From positions 728,410 through 792,409 of the forward strand of contig JAWQFM010000001.1 of assembly GCA_033442325.1 (NCBI GenBank): DNA of 64,000 nt, read 5' to 3'. The notes below the pieces were generated by a model. The model did not search any database. It had not been told where the DNA came from and worked only from the letters and a program-made list of their open reading frames with translations. The position numbers and the translations under genes were made by a program. Below, piece after piece: positions 4,718-8,185 of the stretch. Source of the DNA: Salpingoeca rosetta. Taxonomy: Eukaryota; Protista; Choanoflagellata. The first letter of the stretch is position 1; the number at the start of each line of letters is the position of its first letter.

Positions 4718-5308
4718 CGACGTACNNNNNNNNNNNNNNNNNNNNNNNNNNNNNNNNNNNNNNNNNNNNNNNNNNNNNNNNNNNNNNNNNNNNNNNNNNN
4801 NNNNNNNNNNNNNNNNNNNNNNNNNNNNNNNNNNNNNNNNNNNNNNNNNNNNNNNNNNNNNNNNNNNNNNNNNNNNNNNNNNNNNNNNNNNNNNNNNNNN
4901 NNNNNNNNNNNNNNNNNNNNNNNNNNNNNNNNNNNNNNNNNNNNNNNNNNNNNNNNNNNNNNNNNNNNNNNNNNNNNNNNNNNNNNNNNNNNNNNNNNNN
5001 NNNNNNNNNNNNNNNNNNNNNNNNNNNNNNNNNNNNNNNNNNNNNNNNAGACACACACACAGACAGACACACACACACACACACACGACACACACACACA
5101 CAAGCGTGACGTACCCACTCACCCACAATACAACACGCACACACGCACACACGCACACACGCACACACACATATACACACATACACACACACACACACAT
5201 GACATACCCAGGCTCGCAGGTGAAGAGATCGGTTCGCTGGAACCGGTCTTTGAGCCACTGCTTGGCTCGTTCTTTGGCTTTGTCAAAGCCCGTGGGTCGC
5301 GTTGCCAT
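1..5308 (-). CDS. CBL: Cbl E3 ubiquitin ligase (TKB 4H-EF-SH2, linker, RING, Pro-rich, UBA); multi-exon, start and stop both present
   Basis: Spliced exons give [12 protein letters not shown]..., [103 protein letters not shown]. The last exon is [32 protein letters not shown] with TGA at 1-3. The N-gap 4726-5048 lies in intron 1. Confidence 0.96.
4726..5048. other. Assembly gap in Cbl intron 1
   Basis: Run of N flanked by (CA)n. Confidence 0.99.
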
Positions 5309-5679
5309 TGTGACGCGATGCTGTGGTCGTCACGTGGTGGTTTGTTTGGTACTGGTTGGTCGTTTCCCAGCCGCTTGCTGGACCTCAAACGAGAAACAGG
5401 ACTTGGTTACACAGGATTCACTCGCGCCTCTGTTGCGCCTCTATAAGCAGGGCCGTCTTCTCAACTCCACTTCCACTGTGCAACCAACCAGCAGGCAGCA
5501 GGGGGTTGTGTGTGCGTGGTCGCAGCAAGCAAGCAAGCCAGTAAGCCGGCAAGTGCGGTGTGCTGTGCTGAGGACGAGCTGGTGGGTTGCTTGTTGGTTC
5601 GTTGTTTTTGTTTTGCGAGGAGGAAGAGGGAGGATTGGATTGCGGAAAATTCTTGCGAATCTTAGGCCAATCTTCCACA

Positions 5680-6138
5680 ATGCTGCTGGACGAGGAGGAC
5701 AGGGTTGTGCTGGCGAACGTGCGGCTGGCGTGCCGCTTGTTGCTGCACAAGGACATTGTGTGCATCACTGCGCAGCACTATGCACTCGTGCAGTTGGCGG
5801 CACAGCGAAAGAACCCAGCCATCTATTTCCCCCCAATGGTGCGTGTGTGTATGTATGTGATGTGCATGTGTGTATGTTTGTGTATGTTTGTGTGTGCATT
5901 TCGAGACAAGGACATCAGTGATGCAGGAACCGCGGGCGTGTGTGTGTATATGTGTGTCTGTTTGTGCGCGCGTGCACAGCTGCTGTTCAGTGGTGTAGGT
6001 GCTCCCAGTGGGTGTATTTAGTGTTGGATTTTGCGATGAACATCTCACGCCCTCGTCGCAATCATGCAGGTCCTCATTGCGACATGCATTTATCTCGCCA
6101 GCGTGTCCGGAAAGAAGTCCGTGATGAGGTTCAGGTAA
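5680..6138 (+). pseudogene. 5' fragment of a cyclin-box-like gene (2 exons: 5680-5838 and 6070-~6102), truncated
   Basis: ATG at 5680, phase-0 GT donor at 5839, CAG acceptor at 6069. Joined peptide VLANVRLACRLLLHKDIVCITAQHY...PPM|VLIATCIYLAS resembles cyclin-box helices 1-3 (consensus L..TC.YLASK.EE). The frame then reads into antisense GSK3 sequence and stops at 6136-6138. Confidence 0.5.
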
Positions 6139-6309
6139 ACCTCGTTGGGCTGAACGGAGGAGATGCACCCAAGGGAGATGTTACGGCAGAGAGCACATGA
6201 GGTCGAGGTTGGGCCACACATCACACCCGCACGTGTCAATACGCATGCTTGGGTCAGACAAGCAGTACCCAATCAACACAGACAGAAAGGGAGAGGCACA
6301 GGCAGGCAA

Positions 6310-6399
<90 letters not shown>

Positions 6400-7432
6400 A
6401 CAAAGCAGCGTGGCCGAAGAACGCACCCCCTGGCCGGACGTGAAGAAGTAGTACTTGAGCTTGAGGAGGTTGCCGTGCGACACCTCGCGGAAAATGTCCA
6501 GCTCGCGGTTCTAATGCACGAAGATGCGGCAGGCAGTCAAGTATAAGGCCAGCAGGCACATGAAGAGGCAGGGGGTGAGGTGAGACGGCAGAAAGAACGA
6601 ACACCAATACAACGGCTGGGCCTTGTGTTGTATCTCTGGATGCTGTGCACAACAGCTGTCCTATCTCCAATGTGTTTTGTCGATAGAGCACCGACCTTGT
6701 AGCGCTGGTCTTGAAGCACTTTCTTGATGGCAACGGCCTCGTTGGTCTCTTGCAGAACCGCCTGCACGCAAACAAAAAGGCATGCAGTGAAACACAGACG
6801 GGAATCGTTCGCCAAAGAGTTGTGTGTGTGTGCGCGCGAACGTGAGGAAACGACCGTAACATGGGATGTGCGCATAGTTGCCCATTGACACGCGCATGGA
6901 CAAGAGAACCCCCCCCCCCACACACACACACACGCCAACCAAGCAGGTCTTGCATGCATGCACCTTGAAGACGACGCCAAAGGAACCGGTGCCAATGACG
7001 GTGGGCTCAACATAGGAGAGGACATGCACCTCCTCCTGCGTGGGGTCCAAGTTGGGCACCGTGGCGTTGACTTGGCACACCTGCACCACATTGGGGTCGA
7101 TGCACACGTGCACACACCGTGTGATCGAGAGGCGCGTGAGTCGACACACCGTGGAGCGAGCGAATCAAAATCGATCGTCTGTGTCATGTGCACGCGTGAC
7201 GAGCCATGCAAACAAACACCACACCAAGACAGTTACGGCAAAACAGTACACGCACCTGGACGTTGTTGTTGGCCGTGAACTGGCTCACGTCAACGGTGGT
7301 GGCGGGCTCGCCACCGTCCTCGTCGCGCATGGTGGTGGTGCGCTGGCGGCTGGCCTCATCCTCAGGCTGCTCCTGGTGCGCATGCTCACTGGTGTCCTCC
7401 ACCATTTCGTCTGGGTTCTCGTCGGAGTACAT
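6090..7432 (-). pseudogene. GSK3: GSK3/shaggy-like kinase, N-lobe only (5 exons), truncated
   Basis: Exons 7432-7256, 7080-6964, ~6761-6696, ~6510-6427 and ~6149-6090 encode [84 protein letters not shown]. No HRD, DFG or C-lobe exon was found before the Cbl start. Confidence 0.85.
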
Positions 7433-8185
7433 GGCTGGCTGTTGGCTTGGTCGACAGTCACGTGCACAAAGAGGGCAGACAACAGTCGGCAAACGTGTCA
7501 CGCAATCGCAGGCGAATGGATCTCTTCACCACGGAGGTGGTTGCTGGCTGTGTTCGCGTGTGCGTGTGTCGAGACAACAACACTCCAAGTGTTGTGGGTG
7601 CGGGTGGGTGTAGTATGCTCGGGGGATGCGCGACACACAAACAAAAAGCGTTGTGTGCTTGCGCTTGCGTTGTCTGTATTGGGCCTTCTCCTTCTTCTTC
7701 TTCTCGTGTGTGTGTGTTTTTGGCACAAGCGAAAAAATGCGGCGGCAGATTTTTTTGCTTTCGCTTGTGTGCTTTGTGCTTCTTTGTTTGTGTATTTGTG
7801 TGTGTGTGTGTGTGTGTGTGTGTCGTGTGAGGAGAAGAAAGGTGCCAACAAGAAGCTAGAAGCAAGAGAGGCAAGAAGAAAGGCAAGTGGTCTGCAATGC
7901 AGCGTGGTGTGGTGTTACGGGTGTCGCACGCACACGTCGGAGGCCGTACATGCATGCATGTGCGTATAGTTGCGTTGCCTTTTGTTTGAAAAGGGAGCGT
8001 TATTTGGTTGGGGACAACACTGAACAAACAGACAAGGACAATGTGTTTGTGTTTGTGTTTGTGTGTTGGGGGAGGGAGGAAGGGGAGAAGAAACGTCGAC
8101 AACCATCGAGGTACACGTGAATAGACACAAGTCACCACACAGACAGACAGACAGACACACACACACACACACACCAAGTGTTCAT

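Follow-up and report, generated by a model that had tools for sequence, protein, structure and literature searches.

The tail-to-tail junction of a GSK3 gene and a plus-strand neighbor in the Salpingoeca rosetta reference sequence is very probably a false join

A minus-strand gene for a GSK3-like kinase and an expressed plus-strand gene abut tail-to-tail at positions 6096-6101 of the window, the 64-kb stretch of DNA that was analyzed as a whole. The junction is very probably a false join in scaffold GL832980.1 of assembly GCA_000188695.1 and not a structure of the genome, because DNA contigs of two independent studies, RNA contigs and 64 RNA reads all leave the window sequence at 6096 or 6101. 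The initial annotation had read the arrangement as the trace of a rearrangement (inversion, translocation or duplication) mediated by microhomology, in which both genes were cut together, with a misassembly or chimeric clone as the alternative. The preferred reading is not supported by the contigs and reads just mentioned or by a GSK3 frame that continues in an ortholog-like manner beyond the break, and the alternative proved to be the one that agrees with the data, which do not span the junction. The organism very probably carries a normal GSK3 gene, which would run past exon 5 into C-lobe exons. The 3' parts of both genes are missing from the window, and probably are missing from the whole assembly too.

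Scaffold GL832980.1 showed no mismatches to the window across an overlap of 17.4 kb. Judged by this identity, the window is the published S. rosetta reference sequence; the overlap holds the locus that encodes the database protein P0001 on that scaffold. To build this reference of 2010, two kinds of 454 reads, fragment and 3-kb jumping, were combined with Sanger reads of plasmids and fosmids (PMC4054682), and Levin et al. noted that some candidate variants fell within misassembled parts of it (PMC4381721). Four data sets were compared with the window on positions 5200-7700: DNA contigs of 2013 (X2), DNA contigs of 2024 from a different study (X7), RNA contigs of 2023 (X17) and raw stranded RNA reads of 2026 (X24). 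The features of the region are listed below.

5210-5308, minus strand: first exon of a gene for a Cbl-type E3 ligase, from its open reading frame and same-strand RNA depth; it is the left bound of the region and lies outside the junction.
5680-5838, plus strand: exon 1 of the plus-strand gene, from its open reading frame, a GT donor, an RNA joint at 5837/6069 with the cut shifted by +1, and a 780-nt RNA contig (X17 record 2).
6070-6101, plus strand: genuine part of exon 2 of the plus-strand gene (VLIATCIYLAS), which X2 record 6, X7 record 14 and X17 extend beyond the window sequence.
6090-6095, minus strand: artifactual last codon (R) and TAA stop of PTSG_09505, made of bases of the plus-strand gene; reads leave the window before 6096, and the orthologs have S here and then continue.
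6096-6101, no strand: very probable false join, with CGCCAG common to both true sequences; left contigs fit up to 6101, right contigs fit from 6096, and no listed record bridges the two.
6096-6149, minus strand: genuine part of GSK3 exon 5, which DNA and RNA extend into sequence absent from the window.
6427-6510, minus strand: GSK3 exon 4, from RNA joints 6510|6696 and 6149|6427; matches P0001.
6696-6761, minus strand: GSK3 exon 3 with the catalytic lysine strand, from RNA joints and a PDB search; matches P0001.
6964-7080, minus strand: GSK3 exon 2 with the glycine loop, from RNA joints at both ends and a PDB search; matches P0001.
7256-7432, minus strand: GSK3 exon 1 with the start codon at 7432, from its open reading frame, splice sites and an RNA joint at 7077/7253 which with the cut shifted by +3 becomes 7080|7256; matches P0001.

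As read directly from the window sequence, the GSK3-like gene comprises five exons, all in phase 0, separated by GT-AG introns. Each of the four introns is supported by RNA, with joints at 6149|6427, 6510|6696, 6761|6964 and 7080|7256 after the cut shifts given above, and the 5' untranslated region extends to at least 7610 in an RNA contig (X17 record 4). The sequence around exon 2 that is free of stops was used in a word search and matched one protein, P0001, to which the five-exon product is identical. P0001 is deposited as 'hypothetical protein PTSG_09505 [Salpingoeca rosetta]', has 167 amino acids and carries the Pfam family Pkinase. The best matches of P0001 in the PDB were all GSK3beta or GSK3alpha (E ~2e-28) and the alignment ends at about residue 140 of human GSK3beta, just past the hinge. 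Pfam searches with single exons were discarded as a test of identity, as the pieces were too short to give matches, and the annotated model and the PDB were used instead.

Full-length relatives were sought by an exhaustive profile-free search and then by a word search that added a closer one. The closest are the EukProt entries P0151 (414 aa) and P0003 (401 aa), the latter a GSK3 of a choanoflagellate. The window product shares 62% identity with P0151 over 173 residues, from the N-terminal extension on, and 52% with P0003. Conservation with GSK3 extends over the N-terminal extension, the glycine loop, the AIKKVLQD strand, the region of helix C and the hinge (EVYLNLI..FPDT in the product), and the product possesses the N-lobe hallmarks of glycine loop and hinge. 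The GSK3 label of the initial annotation is borne out by the PDB match to GSK3beta and the identity to P0151, and the assignment of the predicted kinase to GSK3 (CMGC/GSK family) is solid.

Compared to full-length GSK3, the window carries residues 1-166 only; ~240 further residues are missing from the reference, but very probably not from the organism. The kinase C-lobe motifs (HRD..KPxN, DFG and SRYYRAPE/APE-type) are absent from all six frames of the 64-kb window. The initial annotation had described a gene of five in-phase exons that ends at DTLAR* (6090) after the hinge and lacks a C-lobe, and this description of the reference sequence holds on the evidence of the sequence itself, the RNA joints, the identity to PTSG_09505 and the six-frame motif search. 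The gene model to the left of the junction, which is of the Cbl type with Cbl_N, RING and UBA families in 553 aa, starts at 5308 and runs downward on the minus strand, and therefore leaves no space there for the missing GSK3 exons. A search with residues 160-401 of P0003 for proteins of 220-700 aa, a range which fragments of <220 aa would escape, placed no S. rosetta protein with a GSK3 C-lobe among the best 120 hits. The missing piece thus is probably absent from the assembly and not misplaced within it, with a short or unannotated fragment as a further possibility.

The junction was compared with sequence derived independently of the reference. X2 and X7 are genomic in nature, as single contigs span 6406-7700 including all introns, at even depths of 36 and 24, respectively, and intergenic DNA also is covered. 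Depth is even at ~35 in X2 and ~24-31 in X7, which is the single-copy level, and the contigs that end at the junction (35-41 in X2) resemble their flanks in this respect. The junction itself was not found in this assembly-independent genomic DNA: among the contigs listed for X2 and X7, none spans 6096-6101. Instead, the left contig (X2 record 6, X7 record 14) fits the window from 5200 to 6101 and then continues with ~190 unlike bases that start TCAAGCCAAAGATC... / TCAAGCCAAAGATCACATCC..., and the right contig (X2 record 12, X7 record 20; 881 bases) fits 6096-6279 and is preceded by 644 unlike bases that end ...GGCGAATGATGGA / ...GGCGGCGAATGATGGA. The same continuations recur in RNA: the contigs of X17 depart from the window at 6101, and 64 raw reads of X24 depart from it at 6096 with an agreement of 1.0. 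The 64-kb window contains neither of the read-derived continuations.

Both true sequences are matched by the window at 6096-6101 (CGCCAG), and the apparent microhomology therefore is 6 bp, not the 9-bp core at 6094-6102 that had been proposed. The position at which the plus-strand gene was thought to break, 6102, lies within one base of the point where the independent reads leave the window, which is after 6101. The continuation of the GSK3 strand is read-supported, keeps the frame past exon 5 and extends the gene by 10 ortholog-like residues, beyond which the missing C-lobe motifs of a complete kinase domain would lie. It aligns with DTMASVIRRQKRAG / FFPDTMASVIRRQKRAG of P0003 and with DTLSSIV (FPDTLSSIV) of P0151. 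The human GSK3beta sequence at this site, which we take to be PETVYRVARHYSRAKQ, is represented in the PDB alignment itself by PETVY only. The terminal R and stop of PTSG_09505, the latter a TAA at 6092-6090, thus are the antisense of the other gene, because the true GSK3 continuation matches the orthologs at this place.

Taken together, the independent data part from the window at a single point, from either side, and gene structure is regained once the true continuations are followed. Divergence of this kind, restored frames and a truncated gene model are features shared with misjoins and collapsed gaps in draft Sanger/454 assemblies, and misassembly in this reference is on record (PMC4381721). 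In contrast to the usual misjoin, there is neither an N run nor a repeat at this join, and the 6-bp overlap mimics a biological microhomology junction.

The stranded reads of X24 were used to follow transcription across the join. GSK3-sense reads were taken as those with the first mate on the plus strand, which agrees with the neighboring minus-strand Cbl gene and with the usual library type. In the bin 6124-6207, GSK3-sense reads have a mean depth of 22.5 that stems from 26 exonic bases and equates to ~72x at exon 5. In the bin 6040-6123 the depth is 23.9, and a depth of 72x over 6096-6123 alone predicts ~24. Positions 6096-6123 therefore account for the whole depth of this bin, ~0 is left for 6040-6095, and essentially no transcript reaches 6090. 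Plus-gene-sense depth is ~5 in exon 1, falls to 1.6 in the bin 6040-6123 and is 0 beyond, as expected of an exon whose genuine part ends at 6101. The check by stranded RNA sequencing that the initial annotation had advised revealed expression of the plus-strand gene at ~5x and of GSK3 at ~72x. Its suggestion that convergent overlapping transcripts and an N-lobe-only GSK3 peptide might be produced is not supported, given the near-zero GSK3-sense depth at 6040-6095. Neither transcripts across the junction nor transcripts that end at the new stop were found, as judged by this depth and by the 64 reads that leave at 6096. A GTAAAC sequence at 6136 that could be taken for a donor is unused, as no RNA joint begins there. 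Both genes are expressed and spliced as full genes, not as stumps.

That RNA reads leave the window exactly at 6096 also would be expected if the window were correct and the genes were interleaved, with each spliced to distant exons through long introns or trans-splicing so that the loose ends are splice junctions. Splicing of GSK3 to distant downstream exons had likewise been named in the initial annotation as an outcome that would speak against a rearrangement. The same continuations are present, however, in the DNA contigs of X2 and X7 that hold introns and intergenic DNA, which demonstrates genomic contiguity. Moreover, the break on the GSK3 strand lacks a GT or GC donor, as ...CTGGCG is followed there by AGATAA, and neither a C-lobe motif nor either continuation occurs within the 64 kb. 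Interleaving and distant splicing therefore were ruled out, with a residual probability that is close to nil.

The probable false join also severs the plus-strand gene. Exon 2 of this gene resumes after the AG at 6070, and the intron 5838|6070 is confirmed by RNA, in keeping with the splice to VLIATCIYLAS that had been anticipated from the sequence. The translated reads and contigs reveal the true continuation as VLIATCIYLAS-QAKDHIRRL with no stop, and strand-specific RNA depth in exon 1 is ~5 (X24). The plus-strand gene is real, spliced and expressed. The reference annotation has no gene model at 5680-6101, and exon 1 had no counterpart of 82-260 aa in a collection of 5.8 billion proteins.

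The initial annotation had described the plus-strand gene as cyclin-like. Even with E up to 10, Pfam returned no family for either exon or for 45 residues that span the splice and include the true continuation, and exon 1 had no match in the PDB. The 45-residue piece gave 12 matches in the PDB with E up to 10, all of which were cyclin C at E ~0.8-1.3 and thus sub-threshold. The stretch PPMVLIATCIYLASQAK of the plus-strand gene aligns with DPVLMAPTCVFLASKVE, which is helix 3 in the first cyclin box of cyclin C, and the resemblance is not significant. Membership in the Cyclin_N profile was not observed, a result that is weak negative evidence as the query fragments were short (22-53 aa). In contrast to Cyclin_N proteins, the gene has no Pfam match and continues as QAKDHIRRL instead of the expected K-x-E-E, with ~74 residues known. 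The cyclin-like label, with cyclin C as the sole PDB family (E ~0.8) and nothing from Pfam, is neither confirmed nor excluded; a cyclin identity of the predicted product is a lead rather than a finding and is unproven. A feature search of the ESM Atlas with exon 1 was set aside as uninformative, as it yielded scores of <=0.76 with unrelated bacterial clusters.

The junction could instead have been real in the culture of 2010. Under this proposal a microhomology-mediated deletion, inversion or translocation left that line with two truncated genes, whereas other lines retained intact ones. The 6-bp microhomology and the joining of two genes mid-exon are in keeping with such events, and the DNA data are contigs of 2013 and 2024, which drop rare variants, such that a minor junction allele is conceivable. 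However, all S. rosetta laboratory lines are labeled as the same organism, and the 16 same-organism runs of several studies (labeled DNA or RNA by guess) carry the region equally well, with 0.91-0.97 of the sampled words of 5100-7600 in each and 1.00 in none. In the DNA of 2013 and 2024, the intact continuations stand alone and reach full single-copy depth, and the RNA of 2023 and 2026 also has them alone. The proposal demands that all later lines have the intact form and that the sequenced line was deprived of its only catalytic half of GSK3, which would be a drastic lesion, and there is no other S. rosetta protein with a GSK3 C-lobe among the best 120 matches. A genuine rearrangement therefore is regarded as very unlikely. 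A shade less probable still is the specific version in which the 2010 culture carried a real microhomology-mediated deletion allele, in which GSK3 and the convergent cyclin-like gene had lost their 3' halves, which would mean that a viable GSK3-null or N-lobe-only lineage once existed.

A false join thus is the favored reading, and two forms of this error were weighed. In the first, GSK3 and the plus-strand gene would be convergent neighbors, and a few kilobases with the 3' halves of both would have been left unassembled. Gap closing, whether automatic or manual, then may have joined the contig ends through a chance overlap of 6 bp, CGCCAG. The annotation pipeline presumably turned the stump into PTSG_09505, a 'hypothetical protein' of 167 aa with a last residue and a stop that would come from the antisense of the other gene, and would have called nothing for the plus-strand gene. 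In the second form, the join is a chimera of two unlinked loci that arose from a chimeric clone or read, and the scaffold is misconnected on a large scale. The departure of contigs from the window on both sides is compatible with the second form. Chimeric reads are a known by-product of circularized jumping libraries. The 454 3-kb jumping libraries used here are of relevance in this regard (PMC4054682). A tail-to-tail arrangement with both breaks within genes is nevertheless the outcome to be expected if a convergent pair lost its shared 3' region, and a large-scale misjoin should clash with the mate pairs (4-kb, 10-kb and 40-kb) on which Arachne drew. Fusion of unlinked loci in a chimera consequently is a possible explanation, about half as probable as the first form. 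The gene orientation and the passage of the scaffold through mate-pair checks point to neighboring genes and a collapsed, unrecognized gap of a few kilobases, which is favored as the most likely form of the error. As assemblers rarely merge contigs that overlap by 6 bp only, the proximate cause may equally well be a chimeric read or clone.

Among choanoflagellates, Salpingoeca rosetta is the main experimental species, and reconstructions of the signaling toolkit that preceded animals make wide use of its reference proteome. GSK3 is a core kinase of the Wnt/beta-catenin destruction complex of animals. The model PTSG_09505 cuts short a GSK3 that is expressed and very probably intact, and the scaffold lacks sequence at window positions 6096-6101. 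In the reference proteome GSK3 is represented only by this 167-aa stump, named a 'hypothetical protein', and the expressed neighbor is unannotated. Domain-based surveys therefore could score GSK3 of S. rosetta as absent, partial or catalytically dead. A search of the literature recovered no paper that names PTSG_09505, and papers that mention both GSK3 and S. rosetta are silent on this model. The locus calls for re-assembly and both gene models call for correction, which constitutes an annotation fix and no new biology.

Additional observations were made on the composition of the window. Microsatellites of the (CA)n/(GT)n type recur every few hundred bases throughout, exemplified by a tract of ~90 bp at 6309-6397 in GSK3 intron 4. 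The public short-read contigs break at these tracts, which probably limited the original S. rosetta assembly too. A run of 323 N bases at 4726-5048, with CA repeats on both sides, lies inside the 553-aa model with Cbl_N, RING and UBA families, and the first intron or an early exon of this Cbl-type gene also may be incomplete in the reference.

Two GT-rich patches of 20-30 bases, at 5936-5966 and 6821-6838, are touched by ~68 raw RNA reads and several DNA contigs that then diverge from the window. Such sequences have, for instance, a (CTGT)n insert between 5964 and 6821, and 72 of 72 reads carry A>G at both 5948 and 5950. These reads appear to derive not from this locus but from a similar sequence at another place in the genome that is transcribed abundantly, and they raise the depth of bins 5872-5955 and 6796-6879. 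Finally, the database contains a 485-aa 'protein', P0002, in which the GSK3 N-lobe segment NGSFGVV...KKVLQDKRFK is repeated ~7 times in tandem, and which probably is an assembly or gene-model artifact in another organism.
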